Positions 1,113 to 61,020 of a stretch of DNA of 64,000 nt are shown piece after piece. The stretch is from NCBI GenBank assembly GCA_000708835.1, contig DF237388.1:12986-76985 (forward strand). The letters run 5' to 3'. The stretch's first letter is position 1. Each line of letters opens with the position of its first letter. The notes below the pieces were generated by a model. The model was not told where the DNA came from. It saw only the letters and a list, made by a program, of their open reading frames with translations, and searched no databases. The stretch comes from Klebsormidium nitens. Lineage: Eukaryota; Plantae; Klebsormidiophyceae. Made by a program: the position numbers and the translations under genes.

Positions 1113-4100
1113 ATGGGTTCTCTTGTAGGATTCATCCTATCACGCCTTTGGAGAGCCATCATTAGAAGACCGCCCCTGAAAGCAGACCCAATGGACTCGG
1201 CCGTCTTGGACAACGGCCCCAGTTCCGCTTCCAACACTCCGACGCGCCGGCGTATCCACGGCTTCTCCGACAAACACGTGGACGAAGCGCGCGCGTCGGG
1301 CTCGCTCCAGCGCGCAGTTTGGTCGAGCCTCGCGGAGAAGTCGTCGCGGCAATGGACCCACACGTGGGAGAACACGGTCTTCTCCCCCGAGAAGAAGCTG
1401 GGCAACGTGCTGCTAACCACCGCTAACCACCTCCGGAGTGCGGCCAACCACGTGCAGGACTCGATGGGTAGCGGGGGGAGCGGGTATAAGGTTGGGGCGG
1501 GGGTTAAGACCGCGTTCTTGCTGTTGCTTCTGGTGGGGGTTGTTGGGGTTAGTTTGTATGGAACGAAAGAGAGCGTTGAGGGGGAGTGGAGTGTGGGTGG
1601 AAGGAGGTTGCAAGCGGGAGGGGGTTTGAGGAGGGGACCGGAGCTGCCAAAACCAGTCCTGAGGAAAAAGTCATTGCATGTAAGTCTTACACACCTTCTA
1701 AGCAGTAAAGCTAGTCTTAAAGCTGCTAAGCTTGACCTTTCGGCTCTGCGTTTGAATGTAGGAAACAGCAAGCTCAGCGCAGGTAAGTGTCACAGGGCTT
1801 GAACATTTGAATGCAATGGTTTCTATGTCTTTGACATTCGATCTGAGGCGCCTTCAAGTTATTCAGTGTCAAGCACCTACTCTGAGTCACGACCTTGACC
1901 TTGCTTGCTTGTGAGTTCAAGTTGAATAGGCAAGCTAATGTCAGAGGCTATGTTTCAAACCGCGAAACATGAGCAGATTGCACAAACAGCAGTACCAACG
2001 AGAGCGTAGTTTCTCATGTTTTCCTTCCTTTGCAGGCAAGGCGATACCTAGCTGACAAATTGCTCATACCGGCACAAGACCCCGTGCCAGAAAGACTCAA
2101 ACAGCTGGCGGGCAGCAAAAACAAAGCGCTTCGGAAGATTCTGATAGATGGTGGCAAGGGGACGACAAACGGGCTGGACTCGTTGACTCCCCTCAACTCG
2201 ACTTGCAAAGATGGGAAGAGACTCATCGTCGACCCAGGTTAGACATCTTCTCTCCGCAGTCTCAAAGCGCTTCACGAACTTTGTTACTCCAAACTTGTAA
2301 TCCCAGCTTTGACGCCTTTTCAGATGTTGTATGGAAAGACGGCTCTAGCTTTCGTTTCCTAATCACTAACCAGCTGGACTGTCTTTGATGCGTGACGCCT
2401 TCTCGAGTACTGAATTTTGAATGCAAATCATCGTTGCGCCGTCGACTAAGCTGCGGACCATTCCCTTCGAAAAGCCAATGATCACAACAAACCCAATCGA
2501 AGGACTTCATATCTGCGAGACTGCAGGACAGCATACTTTAGAATAGGCGGATTTCGAGCGTTCCATTCTCTCCGAAAGCTGCCCACAAAAGCAGACAGCC
2601 CCACTAAGCCTTATAATGTTTGATTCTCTTGCAGTCCTTCCGGAGAGCAACGGTTATCTCATGGTTCAGCTAAACGGGGGCCTTAACCAGCAGAGGGCGT
2701 CTATCGCAAACGCTGTCGCCGTTGCGTGGATGCTGAACGCGACGCTAGTGCTCCCGTCGTTAAGGGAGAACGCCTTTTGGCAAGACAACAGGTGAGACCT
2801 TCTTCCCGTGATCAGTGCCGCTTTTCTCCCCGATGCAGCTCGTTTGCCAAATACCTCGACGTCGAACACTTTACGGACGTCCTCAATTCTCGGACACCGT
2901 TCTAGCGTCCTCTTTTCAAGCAAATCAGGCTAGATGTTATAAAAGCACAGCTCAACTGATCGCGCCGAAAAGCAACCAGCTTTCTTCAACACGCCCCTTC
3001 CTTTTCCGCCACAGCTCGTTCGCCGAAATCTTCGACGTCGAACACTTCACGGACGTTCTTTCGGACACCGTCCGCGTCGCGTTCCAGCTGCCGATGCCGC
3101 TCCAGTACATCAAGGCGACCAAGATCGACCCGCCCGCTGACGCGAGCGCCGAGTACTACCTGAAAGAAGTGCTGCCGGTGCTAAAAAGAGAACAGGTCGT
3201 CACGCTCAGGCCTTTCACCGACAGGTGAGGACCCAGTTCTAAATGGATGGTTTGCGAGGAGATGGGTCGAACTTGGTTGCGAGACTGCCCAAAAGAAAGC
3301 CCTTTCTTGATCCTTGCTGGGCGAGATTCTTTCGCTCGTTTACGTAGTGGGTCCAAACAAGGCCGCGCCTAAATCAATCCAGCCCCCTCTCCCCCCCCCC
3401 CAAAGTTGCCCCACACAGAAAAATGTGGGGTCAAAAGCGTGTCCTCAGACAGCGCGACTAACTCAAATCCCATTTTTTCCTCCGCCAGGTTGTCCCACAC
3501 GGACGTCCCACCCGTTACGCAGTGGGTACGTTGCAAGGCCAACTTCGAAGCCCTTCGATTGGCGCCCGCGCTCGAAGAGATCGGGCGGCGCATCGTGCAA
3601 CGGCTGACGTTGTACGGACCGTTCGTGACGATCCACCTGCGCTTCGAGGACGACATCCTGGCGTGGTCCGGCTGCCGGTATGACGTCAGCAGGAAGGAGC
3701 AGCAGAAGTTCAAGGGTGAGCTGCGGGTGGTCGTGACGTCAGTAGGAGTGAAGATGAGCGTTTTCTACACCGGTACAGATGCAACCCAGGATTCTATCGT
3801 TTGGAAGGCGTTAAAGTCACACGAACAGCATCGATGTAAGAGTAAGGTGTGTTGTTTAGTGAAAACGAGATTTATTTCTGATGGCCTTTTTATCGTCACC
3901 TTCGCCGCCAAAAAGGGCCAGCAAAGGACGTTGCGCGCGCACATACCGTCAGAAAAGAGTACCCATTCTTTCGTTGAACATGCGGGGGAAAAAAGGTCCT
4001 TGAAACCGACCTGTCAAGTTGCGCAGCGAGAGGGCCCGAGACGGAGACGGAAGTGTACAGACACGCGACTGACATCTTGCCACGTGTCCTCGCGCAGACA

Positions 4101-6172
4101 TGCGCAAGATGCTCGGGTGGTCGTACCGGGAGGAGCTGGGATCACCGGAGGAGAAGCGAAGCGAAGGGCAGTGCCCGCTAACCCCGGAGGTGAGGAAAGA
4201 AGCCGGTTACACCGCCTATTCTTTGTGTTTCTCATTTAACACTCTCTTTTTGTAGCTTTGCCGAAATGTGTAGTTCGAACGGCTGCGCTCTGTCCTGCGT
4301 TCGGAAGTGCCTGGAGGCTTTTTCAATCTAGTATCTTTAAACCTCTAAGACTCTCAATCGATTCGTGCGGAGCTTCTTCGAGTCGAGGCCTCTCAAGTCG
4401 TTTGCACTGGTCACGAGTTACCACAAAGCCGCGATATCGAGATTTAGATATTAGCTGCGGACAAGAGTTCTGATCTTTGCAGTTTAGCGATCGAAGGAGT
4501 GAAGCGGTCAAGTGACACACTTTGCTCAACTCCCTGCCCGTGTCATGTATCAAACGGACCGGTTTCTTCTCAGCTGCTAATGTGAGGCCGCATTTGCGTG
4601 TGCACATCGGGCCCCGGGGGCCGGGGTGGGGCCGTACAGTGTACACCAAACCTGACCCGGCCGGGCCGAAACGGGGGAATCGCTGTCGCCAAAGATCGCA
4701 ATTTCGACCGTCTCCACTGGTCTTTTAACTCCAGACGACAAAGCCTCGCATTTATTGCCGATCTCGAACCATCACAAATGCTTGTTCCTCACTCAGTTTA
4801 AGAGCCCCAAAGTTTAAGCACCCAGAAAGTCACTTCTGGCTCAGAACTAAACCGTCCATCCTAAACCCCGCAGGAAATCGGGCGGTGGCTGCGCGGCCTC
4901 GGCTACTCGTCGCACGCGCAGATCTACCTAGCGTCCGGCAAGATCCACAACGAAGAGGAGTCGCTAGCCAAGCTGCGGACGATCTTCCCCAATCTGCGGC
5001 GGAAAGAGAACGACCTCATGAGCCGCGAGGAGATGGAGGTGTTCGGCGGGCACGCGTTCCAAATGGCAGCGCTCGACTTCTACGTTGCCGCGCACAGGTG
5101 AGCGCGGAGTATGAAACTTAAAATGAAAGGCAATCGGTGAAAACTCGCCAGCTCAACTGCACAAGTCGACCTCTTGTTTGGAAACGGAATCAATTGCAGG
5201 CAGAAGCTCGTACATCAAAACGTTCTGATCTGGGCCAAATAACTTCCATCACGCAAAGTCATGGGCATCTTGTTCTTACCAAGATGCGCACGGACTTCTC
5301 AATCAAGGTCGTTCAAAGAGCAGCATTCATCAGCCAGAGAACTTATGCTGCCCGGCCAATCACCGGCCGCCCTCTTTTCCTCACCGACTTCCGGTAGAAT
5401 CCATCCTAACCCCCGTAGATGACTTGGTGCTCAAGCCGCCAATCCCACCAACTTCTGTCCCTAATTGCTAAACCCAACCGCTGACGTCCCTTTGTCCGTT
5501 CGCAGCGACGTCTTCGTGGCCCCCTTCCCGAGCAACATGGCGGACCTAGTGGTCGGGGAGCGCGTTTACACTCGGCGCCCCGGGCAGGTGCTGGTCCCCG
5601 AGGACCGCAAGGAGCTCACCCGTCTGCTCGACGACACTGACCTCAGCGAGGACGAGTTCGCGGCGCAGGTGAGACGACGTTACGTCAACTGGTGCAGGGT
5701 TTGGTGGCGTTGAGGTAATGATAGAAGGGACTCCGATTTGCTAAAACCACAACTCTTTGAACAGGGTACTGAGAAGAAGCAGAAGCCTGACCCGTCCCAT
5801 AATGAATTCAATAACGGTCCGGAATTAGGTATCTTTCGGTCCATCCAGACAAACAGATTCTTTCCAACTGATTTGCTGGAGAGAGGGACGTTGCGATACA
5901 CTCAACTTTCAAAGGTCGGCGAAATGCGACGCCAAGAACCTTCTTGAATCCAGATTCTTCCGGATGATACTCATAAAAGTTGCAGGGCCGCCTTGTGTAA
6001 GTTGGGATCTGACAGCTGGCATCTTTTCCCGCAGGTGAAAGCGCTCCGCAAGACGTCCATGTCGAAATTCGGCCCCGAGGGGCCGGTGTACAGTAACCCG
6101 CAGAGACCCGACTCGGTTTACGCTAACCCAAGGAAGCACTGCCAGTGCGACGACTCGGTTTCAGAGATGTAG
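1113..6172 (+). CDS. O-fucosyltransferase family protein (plant GT106/O-FucT type, type II membrane), 9 exons, ~659 aa
   Basis: Exons 1113-1679, 2036-2237, 2635-2791, 3015-3224, 3489-3715, 4098-4189, 4874-5097, 5506-5668 and 6035-6172, all GT-AG and phase-consistent (1980 nt). Family motifs SNGYLMVQLNGGLNQQR..NATLVLP, FAEIFDVEHF, IHLRFEDDILAWSGC, GQCPLTPEE, ALDFYVA and SDVF..SNMA. Hydrophobic segment TAFLLLLLVGVVGVSLYG in exon 1. The start Met and the exon 1 donor are less certain. Confidence 0.88.
2821..2900 (+). repeat. Degenerate intronic copy of the O-FucT exon 4 acceptor and exon start
   Basis: tgcag|ctcgtttgccaaatacctcgacgtcgaacactttacggacgt (2839) versus acag|ctcgttcgccgaaatcttcgacgtcgaacacttcacggacgt (3015). 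Confidence 0.85.
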
Positions 6173-51347: not shown

Positions 51348-52249
51348 TCTGGTCTCAAACGGTACGCTTCCAAGTTAGACACCCGGAACCCTAATCTGTG
51401 ACCCCTAGACACGCGATGCCAGAAGGAGGATTTTCTTTCCTTACAATCCTCGGCTCCGTATACTATTACAAGAGAATGCAGGAACACAGGCACCGCCTTC
51501 CTTTGGAATCAGCTCAGAAAGAAGTTGGAGCATGGCTGAGAAAGCGCAAATAAGGCCCGGCCGGCTTGGTGTGGAAGTTGTTGCCAGCGTGGCGCATTAC
51601 GGCCTTCCGATTGGACACAAGATGAACTTCATACTAGCGGCCAGTACGTTCCGAAATTTTCCAGCCCTAGTTGCGAAATGATGGGGATCCCCCTACATCG
51701 AGTACGGAACTGCCATTGTGACTTTTGAAAGGGGTTCAACCATCGTCTCTTTTCCGCATCTTTGAGGTAACGGCTTGGTCCTGATGAAGCATCTCTCATC
51801 TTAGTGCGGCGCTCACGACAGACTGCAATCAGCTAGCGATATTCTTGGCGGTGACTGATTGGCGTGGCAGCCGAACTATAATCTATGTACGTCCAATCAA
51901 ACTGAGAAACGAGGTGAAACCGGCACATGCAGTGGTCAGGGATCCCCGTTGACCGTCTCTGTACCCAGCGCGCTCTTCCGCCAGCTACGTGCCGCTACGC
52001 AAATCTCTCAGTCCCTCTGCAGGTCGGCCGGGCGAATCTACAACAATTTGCACCGCCTTGGAATTGCAGAACAACGGCAGCTCCCAACACTTAGTGTGAC
52101 GTTTGCCCTAAAGCCTCAGCTATAAAGCGGCAATACGATCAGAGAACGAAGCGGAAACTCTGTCGCCTATGCAGCAGCCATGGAAAACCTGGAAGCGCCC
52201 TCTTGCAGAAACCAGAGTTCTGTATTATATGCTGAGTTTCGCTTCCCTT

Positions 52250-52269: not shown

Positions 52270-53517
52270 ACGCCATACGCGCGCGGACAATATACTGGGA
52301 CGAGTTCGATATGAAGATTCATAGACTCGAATCGTCACACTTAGTGCGTCTTAAACTGCGCCAGGCCGCCTTGTAGTTGAGAACTCCTTAGTTTAGCTGC
52401 AGAATCCGGCTTTTGTTGAGAACTCTGGGTCTCGCTTGGATGCCATCATTGCAGTGACTTGTTTGAGCGCTCCAGGTTGGTCCAGGCAATTCTACAATTC
52501 CGTCTGGGCACTTTGGCATACGAGGGGTAATTGCAGACACAAGAAGGCTCTGCAGATCTACGCTCAGCAAGGATTGTGAAAGTACAGTCCGTGGCCACAA
52601 CAAGGGAGTCCCGAACGCTGCCTATGATTGGAAGTAGGCCAGGCACTGCGATTGTCACAGCCTCAGAGGTAAGGGGCGCTGTACCAGAATGGATTGCCGG
52701 CCCGTTGACTTTTTAACTCATCTCATTGCTTTTATGTGATCATCCTTGTAAAGCCCTACTAGGTCAGGTGTTCGCTTTGTAAGGAACATCGTTTCCAAAA
52801 TCTCGTGGCTCACAAGACAAGGGCATGAAAACCCTGTTGTTTTTCTTGAAAAATTGTGTCCACATATCTGTGACAAAGCCCGGATGATAAAGGAAAGATG
52901 ATACTCCCCTCGGGACAGCTTTTCAATCTGTGACAGGTTGACTTTCTGTAACCAGTGGTTCTACCCAAGGGGGACGACCTCTGGTTGAATTTAATGCAGG
53001 AGTCGCATATCCCAAAAGTCGTCAATTGATTAGGCTTCCTATGTTGGCTAGATGCGCGTTCTGGGCTCGTGAGACTGACCAGGAACGAAAGGTCAACCGT
53101 TAGTTAGAAACGAGCTAGTTTTGGACCGACTGCAATTGCTCAAGAGAACCGCACTAGGGCCACTCAACGCTGTACTGGACTGATTGGACTCTGTTTGTGA
53201 GAGGAGGCCTGATATGGACGTCTCATAAAGACCCTCTTCCTTCTCATCTCTTTCTGTGAGACTTGCTTCCCGCTTGCAAGCGTTTCCTGACAGTTAACCG
53301 ACCGTTTTTCTGGCGGTTCACGAGGGTCGATTACGGGCTGGTTCGAAGCTGGTTCTACTGATTTCAGTGACCAGCCTCGAGCAGGGACCAGACTCTTCAC
53401 ATGGTCACAACTAGTCTGGATATTGGCTGAAGAACCAGACTCAAGTCTGGTTATCCAGCCTGATTAGCACGCTAACCCTTCCTGTGTTGATTCGATGCAG
53501 CTTTTGGAACTACAGGA

Positions 53518-53564
53518 ATGGGCTGCTCTTGCTGTCTCTCCTGGGGGAGGCGGCAAAACCCGAG
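53518..53564 (+). CDS. Candidate leader exon of paralogue 1 encoding MGCSCCLSWGRRQNP(R), a myristoylation/palmitoylation-like signal
   Basis: ATG in good context (gga ATG g). The exon ends in phase 2 at AG|GTGAAG, matching the phase-2 acceptor at 54246 (intron 53565-54246). No transcript evidence; other donors such as GTAAGT at 54058 exist. Confidence 0.4.
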
Positions 53565-54247
53565 GTGAAGGCCGACGTGAATGTTTCGAAGCCCATTTCG
53601 CGGTCACTTTTCCGATTGGTAGATATGTTGGTTCAGCATCTCAGACCTCAGGTCTTTGCGGTATATTAGCTGTTGAGTATCTCAAAGCTCAAAGCATGGT
53701 TCCGGATCTTGGACCATTTACGAAGAGGAAGAGGACACAGCATCAAACGGACAACGGCTTACGATTGCAAAGAACTCGACAGTGGGGTGTTTGACGCTTA
53801 TAGAACTTTAAAGTGGTCGAGCTTACATTCGAAGCCGCAAAGTCCAGAAGGGAGGCTCGCCTCTTGATTTGGCTGTTACGAAAGTCCTCGTTAAGGACGT
53901 CTTTGAATTCGTGTCGAAACGCGCTTCAGATTGTTCTGCAAACCGTCAGATTCACACACCTGGTTGCAGAGTAAGATACGTTTGCGCGTCCATTGCACTA
54001 CATAATGAATTTATAGTTGAGCCCTGTAGAAAGGGTGAGAGTAAAAGGTCTGGAGGTGTAAGTGAGAGGTACGAACAAGAAGCGCTGCCAAGAGGGACTA
54101 GTTGCAAAACCCAGGCAGTGCGTCCCAACTGCGAAAGCCAAGAATGATGATCTAGAATTTCGAAGCCAGAGCGCGACGCTATCTTCAATTCAAGTCGCCA
54201 GGTGTCTCCGTCCACCACTCTGATTTACCCATTTCACATCTTGCAGA

Positions 54248-55321
54248 ATGGATGCGTCTCTAGTGCAGACAATCGCGTCCCTGGATATGAACACCAGCAA
54301 CATGAGCCTGGCCCAGAGTTACGGCCTGGCCATCCAGACCGATTCTTGGGAGGACACCGCCCGCACCAAGAACAGCTGCTGGGGCCCCAACATTGCTGAC
54401 CTCACCCTCCACGTGGCGGGCTCCCGTCTCCCGATGATCCGCAAGCCCAACTTCGCTGACGTCACCGCTGACGTCCCAATGAGCTTCTTCAGCGTGACCA
54501 CCGGCAACGAGAAACCCGCTGGAGCCCTCAAGCGGGTCAGCTTTAAGGACTACGTAACCGAGACCCTGGGTCTGCCTAACCTGATTCTTAACCGCGATGA
54601 CGTCTTGCTGGCGTCAGCGCATGCGTGCGTGTTGCCATGCGGCGTCGGCGGCGAGACTGAGTTTTGCCCGCAGCTCTTCAGCTACCAGGCGCGCCCGGAC
54701 GACCCCGCCATTCTAGTTTTCGTTGCGAGCTCCCAGGAGACGTCAGCCCACGTCATCACCGGGGCTGCCGACAAGCTGCTCTTCAACCGCGGCGGCGCGG
54801 CCGCAATGTTCCTAGCGAAGCGCCTGTCGCAGGAGCGGCGCGAGCGCGGGGTTTCGGAGGCGGGCGCGATGACGGATGACGAACTAGATCGGAACGCGAT
54901 CCTCCTGTTCCAGATTCCGCTCAAACAGCGGTCCGAAGCTACCGGCTTCGTTAGACCATACATCCCCATTGCAACTGGAAGCCGCCGCCGCGCCTCCCCG
55001 CTTGCGGGCCTGGAATTCGCGACGCTGCGCGCGTCCGAAAAAACCTACGGCCCCTTCCGAGGTTTGGCAAGGTTTAAGCTCGAACGCAACGCGCGCTTCC
55101 CGATCCGCGTCACGTTCCAAATGTATACGGTGACGGACGATCCGGTTCTGAAGGAGAGCCAAATAAAAAGTCTGGCGGACAAAATCGAAAAGGTGTACGT
55201 GCGCGGCAAGGAGACGGGGAGTCTGGTGACCAACACAACGAACCGCGCAACGGAGCCGCGCCCGCTCGGGAGCGTGATGGGAGCGGAGCAGATGCCGTCC
55301 TTTAACCTGCGTGCGGAATAG
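54248..55321 (+). CDS. Uncharacterised ~357-aa protein, paralogue 1 of 3 (intact, domain in a single exon)
   Basis: Open GC3-rich ORF immediately after a 3' splice site (cacatcttgcag|a ATG). Motifs WEDTARTKNSCWGPNIADLTL, IRKPNFADVT, GNE, QLFSYQ, LLFNRGG, FQIPLK and FPIRVTFQMY. Two paralogues lie at 56225-57341 and 59924-61020. Confidence 0.85.
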   Translation: MDASLVQTIASLDMNTSNMSLAQSYGLAIQTDSWEDTARTKNSCWGPNIADLTLHVAGSRLPMIRKPNFADVTADVPMSFFSVTTGNEKPAGALKRVSFKDYVTETLGLPNLILNRDDVLLASAHACVLPCGVGGETEFCPQLFSYQARPDDPAILVFVASSQETSAHVITGAADKLLFNRGGAAAMFLAKRLSQERRERGVSEAGAMTDDELDRNAILLFQIPLKQRSEATGFVRPYIPIATGSRRRASPLAGLEFATLRASEKTYGPFRGLARFKLERNARFPIRVTFQMYTVTDDPVLKESQIKSLADKIEKVYVRGKETGSLVTNTTNRATEPRPLGSVMGAEQMPSFNLRAE

Positions 55322-56224
55322 CTTGGGAGGGAACGGAACGGAGCAGTTGTCATGGGAAGAAGAGCGGCAGCTTTGCAAGTAAATCTTAGGGGGCCGCTCA
55401 GGAGATACGGATTTTTACTGGACCCGTCGATAAATCAAGTGAAAGATAGTGGTTTGTACGATAAGCAAGGAAACAGGCCCGCCGTGCACGTTCTTAGGGG
55501 CGTAAGATCTAAGCAGCTAAGCATTCATAGTATGCCGTTGAAAACCCGTTAAACACCAACCTCAAGCATCGTGGGTGGCACTGCGGACGACGATGCAGAC
55601 TTATGAAAGTTCAATAAGTAGTATACATAGGGTATATATAACGACGGCAGGTTTTGGGACCATAAAATTTGACTCCATCTTAGTCTTAAAAACCAAATCT
55701 TGATCGAAAGCAAAACGGTTTCGTTCGAAAGCCCCAGAATGAGACCGTCTTGGATAGATATGGACGCAGATAGCAAAAGGGTCTCAAAAGCCAGTAACCT
55801 CGGGAAACTGTTTTCGAAACCAGAGACTATATCTCTGATTTCAAAAGGATTCTCGTATATAGTGAAACATTAAAATGGAGGTTCAAATAAGAGAAAGAGA
55901 GCAGCAGTGTGACGCGCATGTTTTTCGAGCCTTCGGTCAGAGCCAAACAGCACACGATGCACAATGCACATGAGCTCAAAAACCTTCCAGTTCGTGACTC
56001 AAATTCAACTAGTCACGTCCACCAGTTGCATATGTTTTCCAGCAAGTGTGCAGCGCTTGTCGATCCCTTGAGCACTAATTTCCAAGATCACCACCTCACA
56101 CACATCTTAACTTGCTTCTGTCGACTCGATCTAATACGTATCTTCTATTTCCATTATTGGTTCTTTCAAGAAACTTATCGACCAGGGTCGCCCCTCATCC
56201 AACCAGCGGCTGCTCCTTCAGACG

Positions 56225-57347
56225 CTAAAAGTTGAAGAGCGGCATCTGCTCCGCTCCGGTGACGCTTCCGAGCGGGCGCAGTTTCGTCACGCGGTTCGTC
56301 GTGTTCGTCACCAGACTCCCCGTCTCCTTGCCACGAGCGTACACCTTCCCAATCCTCTCCGGCAGACTTTTTATTTGGCTCTCCTTCAGAACCGGGTCGT
56401 CCGTCACCGTATACATCTGGAACGTCACGCGGATCGGGAAGCGCGCGTCGCGCTCGAGCTTGAACCCTTCCAAACCCCGGAAGGGGCCGTAGGTTTGGTC
56501 GGACGCGCGTAGCGTCGCGTACTCCAGGCCCGCGAGCGCGGCCTCGCGGATGCGCTCGTCGGGAGCGGCACCCGGCATCTCGCAGGCGCCAGCGAACACT
56601 GACATCTCACAGCATTCGTCACAATCCGAGTCGTACCGCCATTCAGGCGCCGGGCGCTGCTTGAGCGGGATCTGGAACAGGAGGAGCGCGTTCCGATCTA
56701 GTTCGTCGGCCGTCATCGCGCCCGCCTCCGAAACCCCGCGCTCGCGCCGGTCCTGCGACAGGCGCTTGGCTAGGAACATTGCGGCCGCGCCGCCGCGGTT
56801 GAAGAGCAGAGCTCTTGTCGGCAGCCCCGGTGATGACGTGGGCTGACGTCCCCTGGAAGCTCGCAACGAAAACTAGAATGGCGGGGTCGTCCGGGCGCGC
56901 CTGGTAGCTGAAGAGCTGCGGGCAAAACTCAGTCTCGCCGCCGACGCCGCATGGCAACACGCACGCATGCGCTGACGCCAGCAAGACGTCATCGCGGTTA
57001 AGAATCAGGTTAGGCAGACCCAAGGTCTCGGTTACGTAGTCCTTGAAGCTGACCCGCTTGAGGGCTCCAGCGGGTTTCTCGTTGCCGGTGGTCACGCTGA
57101 AGAAGCTCATTGGGACGTCAGCGGTGACGTCAGCAAAGTTGGGCTTGCGGATCATCGAGAGACGGGAGCCCGCCACGTGGAGGGTGAGGTCAGCAATGTT
57201 TGGGCCCCAGCAGCTGTTCTTGGTGCGGGCGGTGTCCTCCCAAGAAACGGTCTGGATGGCCTGGCCGTAACTCTGGGCCAGGCTCCTGTTGCTGGCGTTA
57301 CAGTTCAGGGACGCGATCTCACGAACTAGAGGCGACTCCATTTTCAC
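56225..57347 (-). pseudogene. Paralogue 2 of the uncharacterised family, frameshifted by a 4-bp insertion near 56808-56815
   Basis: About 98% identical to paralogue 1 over roughly 430 nt by eye. Copy 1 gacaag-ctgctcttc versus copy 2 gacaagAGCTctgctcttc. The downstream half continues in another frame to TAG at 56225. Acceptor ttctctgccag|GTG AAA ATG. Confidence 0.75.
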
Positions 57348-58131
57348 CTGGCAGAGAATGGAAAGCGCTGTCGAAGGTTGAAGGGCGCGAACTTTTTCTT
57401 GGAAATGTTCTCCCTTTACTGTTGTTTGGCGTGCGAAACAGAAAGGAGTCCAAGGACACAGACAACGGTGAAGCTCCTGCAGAATTGCAGAACTTCCAAT
57501 ACGACATCGGACAAGCAGAAGCCTAATTTCGATCACGAAGGTTCCCGAGGCGTCTCTGGATTTATCACGTTGGCATGGTTTGATCTGCTTTCCAGTTGTG
57601 TGTTTGTAGCATACGAAGCTCCGCCAAAGTCTATGCACAGCGGAATCTGAGCTCAGAACAGGAGCAAGCTACCTCTTTTTATGAAATTATAGAAAGGCCA
57701 CAGAGTGCTGCTAGAATGACTCATGCCTGTGCCGAGCGGGGGTTTCTATCTGCGAAACTGAAAGAGGTAACCAATCCTCCGAGCTTTCGGGAGAAGCTGT
57801 GACCATTTGACGACACTGATCTCAAATCTGTTAATTTTAATCTTTTCCCATTTTGTCGTTCTTCTCCCTTTCAAGAGTCTAATCCGTCGTTAAGAACTTC
57901 AGTCTCAAGCTTGTGGCAAATCACTTCACATAAATCAAGTGTTCTCAAGCTCTTTACAACATGATCTTTGAACAAACTCCCTCAAGAAGATTCCGAGTCT
58001 TCGTCTCAACGTGTAAGCCTCGAAAGGTTCCTCTTGCGACAAATCAGCACCGACTCTAGATTCCTGAAGCAGGGACATAAGAGCAGCTGAAAAACGACAA
58101 AAGGTTGAACAAAATTTTTGTGTGCACTTAC

Positions 58132-58299
58132 CGTGGTCCTGTATGCTGAAGCTCCTTGTCCGGAAGGGGTGGCGTTCAAGACTCCCTGTAGTGTGAGCGC
58201 GGGGTTTGCTTTCACGATAAACCTCCTGGCTGCAGTAGACGGTCTTACAGCTTTTGGTAAAAGGGATTTGCTCAGCAAGCGCAGACTTTGAAAAGACAT
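58132..58299 (-). CDS. Candidate leader exon of paralogue 2 encoding a transit-peptide-like sequence (MSFQSLRLLSKSLLPKAVRPSTAARRFIVKA...)
   Basis: 56 codons, rich in Ser/Arg/Lys/Ala/Leu with no acidic residues and a VKA-type cleavage motif. It ends ACG|GTAAGT in phase 0, matching the phase-0 acceptor at 57348 (intron 784 bp). Confidence 0.6.
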
Positions 58300-59923
58300 T
58301 GTGGCCGCCTTCAAACCTCACAGCAGTAGGCCCGCTTCACCAAACAGAGTGATCTGGCGTAGTAGTGAGAGTTTTGACACTTTTCGAGGTCAAGAGTCGC
58401 GTCAGCAGTGACGTTTCCGCGCGGAGGGCACACGCAGACGTGTTTGAGCAATCACAGCCGTCGATTCACAAGCTGTGCGGCTGATCGACGGCTGTCAGGT
58501 TGTTGGGTAGAGTTGGGAGAGCGGGGTTTCACGGCTGACAACTTAGGAATTGGAAGGCCAACATACACCCTCAAGCCGCTTGCATCATAGCGCCCATACT
58601 GAGTATCTAGATGCAGGAGAAGAGGTTGCAGTACCTCAGGAACCTGCGAAGTGCACCTGACGTCTCACAACAGCTTCCAAATTTCGCCGTCGATTCTGCA
58701 CAGCGTGCATTGACGGCTATCGATTGCTCAGGCACGTCCCTCCATGACCTCAGGTCACGTTACTGCTGACACGGCAAACCTGGCATCCGAGTAGCCGACG
58801 GCCGTGCTGTCACGACCTTCTTTTGTGACACTCACATCGCTCCAAATTCCAATCCTCGATCAGCTTTGCAGCCGGGTAAACTACAGCGCATGGGTCAGTC
58901 AGTAACGGCTGTGAAAGTGAAGGAGCTTCTGAAGGTGGTGTCCACAATCAGCCTGACAAAGCCTGCGCTTGCTAAGGGACCTAGTCACCAGAAGATCTGC
59001 ACATGACGGTGCAGCGAGGAAGTTTGAAGCGCTCACAAAACTGGGGGTTCAGGTTCAAGTTCTGATCGCCGCCCGTTCCTGGAATAAGGAAGCAAATTTG
59101 CCCGGCAAACAAGCACAAAGGTAAGGGGACTTCACCAGAGCTAGCCTAAAGTTTGTTTAACCTTCTGACGCTTTTCATCCGCTTGTATGCCGATTTTGAT
59201 TGTGAAAGCCCAGGTCAGTGCTCCTGCGTTGCACGAAACATGTAACTAGAAATGTATTGGCTTGCACAAGACCAAGACGAGTCTTTCTTCCTTGAAAGAC
59301 TTTGTTCAAGAGTTCCGTAACAAGGCCTGAGGACGATCGTCTTTGCACAGCAGCGGTCTGAAGTCACATCGCGATGTAGTGTACGGTTTTGTTCATGAAA
59401 AGGAAGACGAAATACAAGATGAGCAACGTGAAGAATCACAAATTCTGAGTCGTCAATTGGTCACAACTTCGAATTTCTCTCAATGCAAGGATTATTGTCT
59501 ACTTCTTGCTCCTGGCAGCGGTAGCTTGGAGGTATCTACTCTCGCAGCGCTTTGTCTCCGGCTTTCTGACTTGACAATTGACATTGCATTCAAACTTGAC
59601 CATGTCTTCCGATCGGGTTCCGCTATCATTTGTCATGGACGTTTTGTACCTTGCATTGGAACAAGTTGTCTCTTTTCTTGAAATCCTGGACAAATGCAGT
59701 CACTAGACGAACATTTCAAACCTAATAAGCAGCCAAAGACGTCTCGAGAATCTCAGTCACCAGAATCGGCGTATAACATGACCACTTCTTCCTCGTTTGT
59801 GCCAGGACTCACAATAGCTTCACCTTATGTGTCCCTCTGAAACCCCTGGATCTCAAGAGGGAGAGGAGTAATCCGCCAGGTGGCTTCACCTCATCAAATA
59901 CTCGTCCACATCTGCAGATAACA

Positions 59924-61020
59924 ATGGACTCGTCTCTAGTTGAAGAGATTGCGTCCCTGGAGGATCTCGCCAGCAACATCAGCCTGGCCCACAGTTACGG
60001 CCTGGCCATCCAGACCGTTTCTTGGGAGGACACCGCTCGTACCAAGAACAGCTGCTGGGGGCCCAACATTGCTGACCTCACCCTCCACGTGGCCGACTTT
60101 GATCTCCCGATGATCCGCAAGCCCAACTTCGCTGACGTCACCGCTGACGTCCCAATGAGCTTCTTCAGCGTGACCACCGGCAACGAGAAACCCGCTGGAA
60201 ACCTAAAGCGGGTTAGCTTCAAGGACTACGTAACCGAGACCCTGGGTCTGCCTGACCTGATTTTGGACCGCGATGGCGTCCTGCTGGCGTCAGCGCAGGC
60301 GTGCGTGCTGCCCGGTGCGGCGTCAGCGGCGAGACGGAGTTCTGCCCGCAGCTCTTCAGCTACCAGGCGCGCCCGGACGACCCCGCCGCTCTAGTTATCA
60401 TGGCGAGCTCCCAGGGGACGTCAGCCCACGTCATCACTGGAGACGACGACAAGCTGCTCTTCAACCGCGGCGGCGCGGCCGCGATGTTCCTAGCGAAGCG
60501 CCTGTCGCAGGACCGGCGCGAGCGCGGGGTTCCGGAGGCGGGCGCGATGACAGACGACGAACTAGATCGGAACGCGCTTCTCCTGTTCCAGATCCCGCTG
60601 AAGCAGCGCCCGGCGCCCAAACGGCGGTACCATTCTGGGTATGAAAGCGCCAAATGCAGTTTCAGAGGCGGCGCGGCGGCCGGGTCCGCGCGCAAAGCAT
60701 GCAAACACGCGCGCGATGCCTCCCCGCGCGCGGGCCTGGAGTACGCGACGCTGCGGGCGTCGGACAAAACGTGCGGCCCCTTCCGGGGTTTGGGAGGGTT
60801 TAAGCTCGAGCGCGACGCGCGCTTCCCGATCCGCGTCACGTTCCAGATGTATACGGTGACGGACGACCCGGTTCTGAAGGAGAGCCAAATAAAAAGTCTG
60901 GCGGACAAAATCGAAAAGGTGTACGCGCGTGGCGAGGAGGCGGGGAGTCTGGTGACGAACATAACGGAGCGCGCTACAGAGCCGCGCCCGCTCGCGAGCT
61001 CCGCCGGAGGGGAGCTCTAG
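59924..61020 (+). pseudogene. Paralogue 3 of the uncharacterised family, frameshifted near 60313-60315
   Basis: Copy 1 ttg cca tgc ggc versus copy 3 ctg ccc GG tgc ggc (+2 nt). The homologous reading continues in ORF 60301-61020. Acceptor cacatctgcag|ATA ACA ATG. Confidence 0.75.

Follow-up and report, generated by a model that had tools for sequence, protein, structure and literature searches.

A 64,000-nucleotide stretch of the genome of the green alga Klebsormidium nitens, referred to here as the window, ends, according to gene look-ups, with the last base of scaffold DF237388.1 and carries three neighbouring copies of a gene that has a fourth paralogue on another scaffold. The initial annotation of this locus, made from the DNA letters alone, described copies 1 and 2 and proposed that the same domain had been retargeted to the membrane and to the plastid by different amino-terminal leaders encoded on separate upstream exons. 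The features behind that proposal are real, and the leader of copy 1 is part of the public gene model, but the leader of copy 2 is an old exon shared with the other copies and sits on a broken gene. Beyond what had been described, a third copy (59924-61020) is present, and copies 2 and 3 are both frame-broken. Coordinates of the features are collected in Table 1.

Similarity among the copies, at 86-95%, begins 1-9 nucleotides (nt) before the ATG of the domain and ends near the stop codon. The intact open reading frame (ORF) of copy 1, at 54248-55321, is 100% identical to K. nitens KFL_004390080. When copy 2 is read from its domain ATG, the frame is lost after codon 176 and translation ends after 232 codons at a stop at 56643-56645, so that the conserved C-terminal part is lost. 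Copy 3 carries about 2 additional nt, and reading from its ATG ends after 156 codons. The extra nucleotides in both copies were defined by comparison with copy 1, the intact paralogue, and with the family as a whole, and on this ground both look like pseudogenes. The public models of copy 2 (P0005) and copy 3 (P0006) start at the domain ATG, the former without a leader, and skip about 49 and about 45 conserved residues, respectively, around the breaks. Piecewise comparison of the in-frame segments gave ratios of nonsynonymous to synonymous substitution rates (dN/dS) of 0.13-0.63, which indicate that the copies are under some constraint; taken together with dS values of 0.09-0.34, these ratios make the frame breaks look recent, unless the copies have been patched by gene conversion. 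The linker between the two conserved parts of the protein (54940-54990, 56555-56650 and 60610-60720) has neither length nor sequence in common between the three copies, in contrast to its flanks at 86-95% identity, and in the structure model of copy 1 linker residues 233-248 are the sole long low-confidence stretch.

Table 1. Coordinates of the gene copies, their upstream exons and introns, and a neighbouring host exon in the window (a slash marks the exon-intron junction)
Feature	Position	Strand	Remarks
Copy 1 domain exon	54247..55321	+	Intact 357-codon ORF, ATG 54248
Copy 2 domain exon	56225..57347	-	ATG 57341; frame broken by 4 extra nt (56810-56813)
Copy 3 domain exon	59918..61020	+	ATG 59924; frame break near 60313-60315
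Copy 1 leader mini-exon	53518..53564	+	MGCSCCLSWGRRQNP + 2 nt (phase 2); donor GAG/GTGAAG
Copy 1 remnant of shared exon 1	52490..52668 (5' limit approximate)	+	Donor CAGAG/GTAAGGGG
Copy 1 ancestral intron	52669..54246	+	1578 nt; contains the MGC mini-exon
Copy 2 leader exon	58132..58299	-	168 nt, 56 codons, phase 0; strong donor ACG/GTAAGT
Copy 2 intron	57348..58131	-	784 nt
Copy 3 version of shared exon 1	58947..59120	+	Donor AAAG/GTAAGG, wrong phase
Copy 3 intron	59121..59917	+	797 nt; acceptor CTGCAG 6 nt before ATG
Region between divergent first exons of copies 2 and 3	58300..58946		Nested mirror-image matches; presumed shared bidirectional promoter
GDP-fucose protein O-fucosyltransferase match	3406-4239		E=1e-14; ordinary host exon

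The domain has no match among Pfam, NCBIfam or PDB sequences, and a fold search of its model against the PDB returned no real match, the best template modelling (TM) score being about 0.15. Sixty-one homologues were found. An alignment of 58 homologues was used as input for an AlphaFold2 model of the copy 1 domain, which has a predicted local distance difference test score (pLDDT) of 90 and a predicted TM score (pTM) of 0.89. In the BFVD database the domain matches two uncharacterised proteins, A0A481YYX2 of Marseillevirus LCMAC202 and M1PVX0 of Moumouvirus goulette, over the whole-protein fold and at 32-41% identity, with E=3e-42 and 5e-38 and TM scores of 0.88 (Marseillevirus LCMAC202) and 0.85 (Moumouvirus goulette). 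Homologues also occur in viral surroundings: P0065 lies 5 kb from a Capsid_NCLDV gene, in which NCLDV stands for nucleocytoplasmic large DNA viruses, and P0032 and P0012 belong to dense intronless arrays together with F-box/RCC1, ankyrin and D12 methylase genes. By both sequence and fold similarity to giant-virus proteins and the viral genomic context of the homologues, the copies belong to an unnamed family associated with giant viruses (Nucleocytoviricota) and resident in Klebsormidium. In the family the start codon lies at a median of 37.5 residues before a conserved Trp and most members have no N-terminal extension; with 33 residues in copy 1, the domain Met is a family-typical start, which agrees with the earlier suggestion that the internal ATG could itself initiate the protein.

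Several features of the wider family were recorded alongside. In locus L007 (957-2234 and 7049-8234) a distant homologue sits near the NCLDV major capsid gene, and the dense, intronless homologue arrays of L005/L006 and L008 comprise F-box/RCC1, ankyrin, 2OG-Fe(II) oxygenase and D12 methyltransferase genes. The variable Cys-rich linker has an inserted ubiquitin-like domain in P0012, P0014, P0015 and P0020 and, in P0031 (residues 295-339), a segment corresponding to the C-terminal part of the chlorovirus minor-capsid protein P11 (P11_C); P0036 has an N-terminal DUF2934 at residues 17-47.

Directly upstream of the domain ATG each gene has a predicted intron. At six loci, including two related-alga loci of a Joint Genome Institute (JGI) metagenome, its acceptor is kept at a distance of 1-9 nt from the start codon. 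The acceptors described by the initial annotation are present: in copy 1 the CAG that follows a pyrimidine-rich tract has 54246 as its last base, with one further base before the ATG, and in copy 2, on the minus strand, 57348 is the last base of the CAG and the ATG comes after another 6 nt. Homology between the introns of copies 2 and 3 extends over their first ~500 nt (two 250-nt blocks, z=15-18), with z=2.5 only over the last ~290 nt, and the old donor of copy 1 (52668/52669) together with the next 250 nt aligns to the start of the copy 3 intron at 73% identity (z=18.6). The homology continues into the first exon. The leader exon of copy 2 aligns to 58947-59120 of copy 3 (z=12), and a 47-nt block of the copy 1 remnant matches it at 72% (E=0.004); a tblastn search with the leader in the window and the related loci returned a weak match to copy 3 only. 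Copies 2 and 3 lie in head-to-head orientation with mirror-image upstream regions: the inverted pairs I1-I3, I5 and I6 share one common centre near 58590-58620, and a blastn match in the region between the first exons covers 96 nt at 71%.

An in-frame ATG in the shared exon 1 is found in copy 2 only, in comparison with copies 1 and 3, the fourth paralogue and the two related-alga loci. In copy 1 all three frames of the remnant are closed and no ATG ORF is open into the domain. Copy 3 has ATC at the position of the copy 2 ATG and TGA just before the homologous frame, and the fourth paralogue retains a 15-mer and a GTAAGC donor at L003 11418, 330 nt before its acceptor, with the frames closed. 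No in-phase ATG leader at a GTRAG donor was found in copy 3, in the fourth paralogue or at the two related-alga loci, and in copy 1 the only one is a 5-codon MRVLG ORF (53052-53068) that lies outside the shared exon.

Some additional observations concern these upstream regions. Mirror-image motifs rich in GACGGCT, ACGTCAC and CTGCTGAC occur at 58398-58495 and 58705-58773, between the divergent first exons, with a perfect 12-nt hairpin at 58454-58495, and these motifs may act as promoter elements common to both copies. An assembly gap of 20 N (52230-52249) lies about 240 nt upstream of the old exon 1 of copy 1, so that the 5' end of that exon and the promoter may be incomplete. In the public model KFL_001700150, the first coding exon of the fourth paralogue measures 6 nt and the variable linker is interrupted by an intron (L003 10001-10006, 10679-10735, 12527-12704), two features that look like work-arounds of gene prediction; the old exon-1 donor of this paralogue is better placed at L003 11418/11419.

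Since the leader exon and intron of copy 2 are homologous to those of copies 1 and 3, they were inherited and not captured. The original proposal, that both leaders are working targeting signals acquired by separate capture of foreign exons, one for the membrane in copy 1 and one for the plastid in copy 2, is thus very improbable. It is true that the ORFs, phases and splice motifs are as first described, that the compositions are unusual and that the copy 1 leader is included in a public model. However, the body of copy 2 is frame-broken, its leader exon has homologous counterparts upstream of copies 1 and 3, and the mirror homology argues against capture as well. In addition, no donor gene or paralogous leader was found by a phmmer search of the full library of 1.84 billion representative proteins, which returned three long low-complexity repeat proteins only, or by a scan of metagenome contigs, which returned no relatives of the leader.

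The copy 2 leader resembles chloroplast transit peptides with a V-x-A cleavage motif in being, as previously noted, an acid-free 56-mer that contains RRFIVKA; it has no D or E, 12 S/T, 8 R/K and 8 Ala, with IVKA at residues 28-31. It differs from them in its frame-broken body, in being apparently non-coding in the sister copies and in showing no clear signature of coding constraint. Because the body is frame-shifted by the 4-nt insertion, the leader is not in frame with an intact mature protein, and no full-length plastid form can be made from the sequence as assembled, for which such a form is not credible; the public model, as described above, leaves the leader out. Present-day plastid targeting through copy 2, as the initial annotation had envisaged, is therefore unlikely.

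We consider it probable, on these data, that the cluster descends from one gene unit whose exon 1 was untranslated and that it now consists of an intact copy 1 and frame-shifted copies 2 and 3. The ancestral unit would have had a short exon 1, then about 0.8 kb of intron reaching to within 1-9 nt of the start codon, and a single protein exon; exon 1 would most likely have been an untranslated 5' leader, with translation starting, as is normal for the family, at the domain ATG. In copy 1, a 47-nt mini-exon within the old intron would supply an upstream in-frame ATG; copy 2 is the sole copy whose exon 1 holds an ATG and an open, in-phase, transit-like frame; and in copy 3, itself frame-shifted, exon 1 is not translatable into the domain. 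The data show the gene anatomy, the homologies, the frame breaks and the kinship with viruses, from which splicing, the start of translation, acylation and an untranslated ancestral exon 1 are inferred. That an untranslated leader is the most likely ancestral state of exon 1 is suggested by the comparison of copies 2 and 3, in which mismatches fall 10/12/12 by codon position, with many gaps, and identity is 77% in exon 1 and 70-73% in the intron.

A number of observations weigh against this reading, most of them in favour of past translation of exon 1. In copy 3, the frame that corresponds by homology to the copy 2 leader is still open for 54 codons. The spacing between four conserved blocks of exon 1 differs by a net 3, 15 and 12 nt according to our reading of the alignment, all multiples of three, which is a hint of past translation. 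The leader ORF of copy 2 is improbable by chance: in shuffled sequences, an ATG exon of matching phase, with a GTRAG donor no more than 1.5 kb away, reached at least 15 codons in 25-32% of cases and at least 56 codons in ~4%, and an acid-free, S/T-rich and R/K-rich make-up was found in 4 of the 260 open 56-codon ATG frames of the window (1.5%). Its GC content at third codon positions (GC3) is 0.50, within the range of long host ORFs (0.48-0.66), so codon usage leaves room for a coding role. Errors of the genome sequence, a 454/Illumina assembly (PMC4052687), could also account for the frame breaks of copies 2 and 3, and an exact look-up of the 357-amino-acid and 373-amino-acid products returned the genome scaffold only, the splice junctions being read from the sequence. 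Separately, the contrast between the GC3 of the leader and the values of 0.78-0.85 in the domain and the O-fucosyltransferase exon had been considered as evidence against coding and was dropped in view of the range of the long host ORFs.

Several of these points, together with the full in-phase ORF and transit-like make-up of the copy 2 leader and the fact that copy 1, apart from a difference of 6 nt, retains this frame around R-x-IVK, would fit an alternative in which exon 1 was ancestrally translated as a transit-like leader that decayed in copies 1 and 3 and in the fourth paralogue, was kept in copy 2, the body of which broke recently, and was followed in copy 1 by the gain of an intronic acylation leader. 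We regard this history as rather unlikely. Mismatches show no excess at third positions, and exon 1 is not better conserved than the intron; the aligned start reads ATC in copy 3, where the alignment is good, and ATT in copy 1, where it is weak; and neither the two related-alga loci nor the fourth paralogue has an in-phase ATG leader, just as an N-terminal extension is lacking in most family members. The locus resembles the 5' untranslated region (UTR) introns and leader exons of plants and algae in the acceptor conserved near the start codon at six loci and in the evolution of exon 1 at the same rate as the intron. It differs from plain 5' UTR leaders by having, in two of its copies, an upstream ATG that is in frame with the protein, whether by accident or as an acquired state.

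The second of these upstream ATGs, that of copy 1, lies outside the shared exon. The mini-exon has the position, sequence and phase reported by the initial annotation, and the public protein P0001 (KFL_004390080; gene range 53518-55321) begins with exactly this leader. As it is the start of the public coding sequence, that half of the finding is already annotated. The introns of copies 2 and 3 lack an equivalent of the mini-exon, which sits within the old intron of copy 1 and gave no significant alignment to either of them; the region of the mini-exon shares with the fourth paralogue a single common 18-mer (z=3.1). Dual-acylated MGC N-termini are known from plant CBL and CPK proteins and from the SH4 motifs of the Src family, and copy 1 is like these in its putative Met-Gly-Cys start, in the fit of MGCSCCL to PROSITE PS00008 and in the further Cys at positions 5 and 6. 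It is unlike the rest of its own family, no other member of which starts with MG. Among the 1824 ATGs on both strands of the window, 13 fit PS00008, and the copy 1 start is the only one with Cys at position 3 and the only instance of ATG-GGN-TGY. On this basis, it is plausible that dual acylation anchors the copy 1 protein in a membrane, and should the mini-exon be part of the mRNA, we lean slightly towards a protein that starts with MGCSCC, is probably myristoylated and palmitoylated and would hence be membrane-bound.

Near the mini-exon, palindromic motifs (CCAGACT...AGTCTGG) are present just upstream, at 53386-53455, and an 18-mer from this segment recurs after the exon-2 donor of the fourth paralogue (L003 10744-10761) with 17 of 18 bases identical, a result equalled in 2 of 300 shuffles; motif and 18-mer may represent a small repeated element.

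Whether the MGC start is used can be weighed against the possibility that it is a by-product of gene prediction, the mRNA being spliced from 52668 to 54247 or starting elsewhere and the protein being made from the domain ATG. Tiny first coding exons are typical where coding exons are forced onto 5' UTR introns, and the 6-nt first exon in the model of the fourth paralogue is of this kind. The mini-exon, moreover, is without a counterpart in the other copies, and the old GTAAGG donor is stronger than the GTGAAG of the mini-exon, which, not being GTRAG, is also weaker than the donors counted in the shuffle test. The models were produced with Augustus after mapping of assembled transcripts (PMC4052687), a procedure that bears on the question in both directions, since if intron hints drove the model, the junction 53564^54247 is backed by transcripts. 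Against a by-product stand also the rarity of the MGC start, one in 1824, and the GC content of the mini-exon, 64% compared with 48-50% in its flanks. We judge a prediction by-product to be a serious possibility, though one that falls short of even. Both leaders are unusual in content, yet a reader free to recognise any signal has many chances to find one.

The setting of the cluster is that of an ordinary host chromosome segment. An EB1/CH-domain gene lies upstream and an O-fucosyltransferase (O-FucT) exon at 3406-4239, and both neighbouring genes are ordinary, intron-rich and of host type. The window contains no further long intronless ORFs and no viral Pfam matches; for these reasons, the idea that it represents a large integrated virus was rejected. 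Genes of NCLDV type embedded in K. flaccidum/nitens scaffolds have been reported before (Gallot-Lavallée and Blanc 2017, PMC5294986), and the present copies, as viral-type genes within host scaffolds, are like them; they are unlike the genes of that survey in that it reportedly scored only five core markers, which do not include the present family. A literature search by gene identifier found no paper. In comparison with A0A481YYX2, M1PVX0 and their homologues, the Klebsormidium copies stand out by a host-style intron before the start codon and by upstream exons, whereas the metagenomic homologues form intronless arrays, and by their intron-rich host neighbours EB1 and O-FucT.

The initial finding is mostly explained, one leader being already annotated and the other lying on a broken copy. 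In a more far-reaching history, a streptophyte alga would have domesticated a protein related to those of giant viruses and given it a host intron and a translated transit-like leader; this leader would then have decayed in most copies and in one have been replaced by an intronic dual-acylation mini-exon, so that turnover of leader exons retargeted the protein serially. Such a history appears improbable to us. With exon 1 read as an untranslated leader, the locus neatly illustrates how upstream ATGs can appear and disappear before a fixed protein body when an intron lies in the 5' UTR. It also shows how gene predictors and human readers alike can mistake these ATGs for signs of targeting. Use of the copy 1 leader would tether to algal membranes a virus-related protein of unknown fold, and this tether, if true, would provide a first handle on the role of a widespread giant-virus family.

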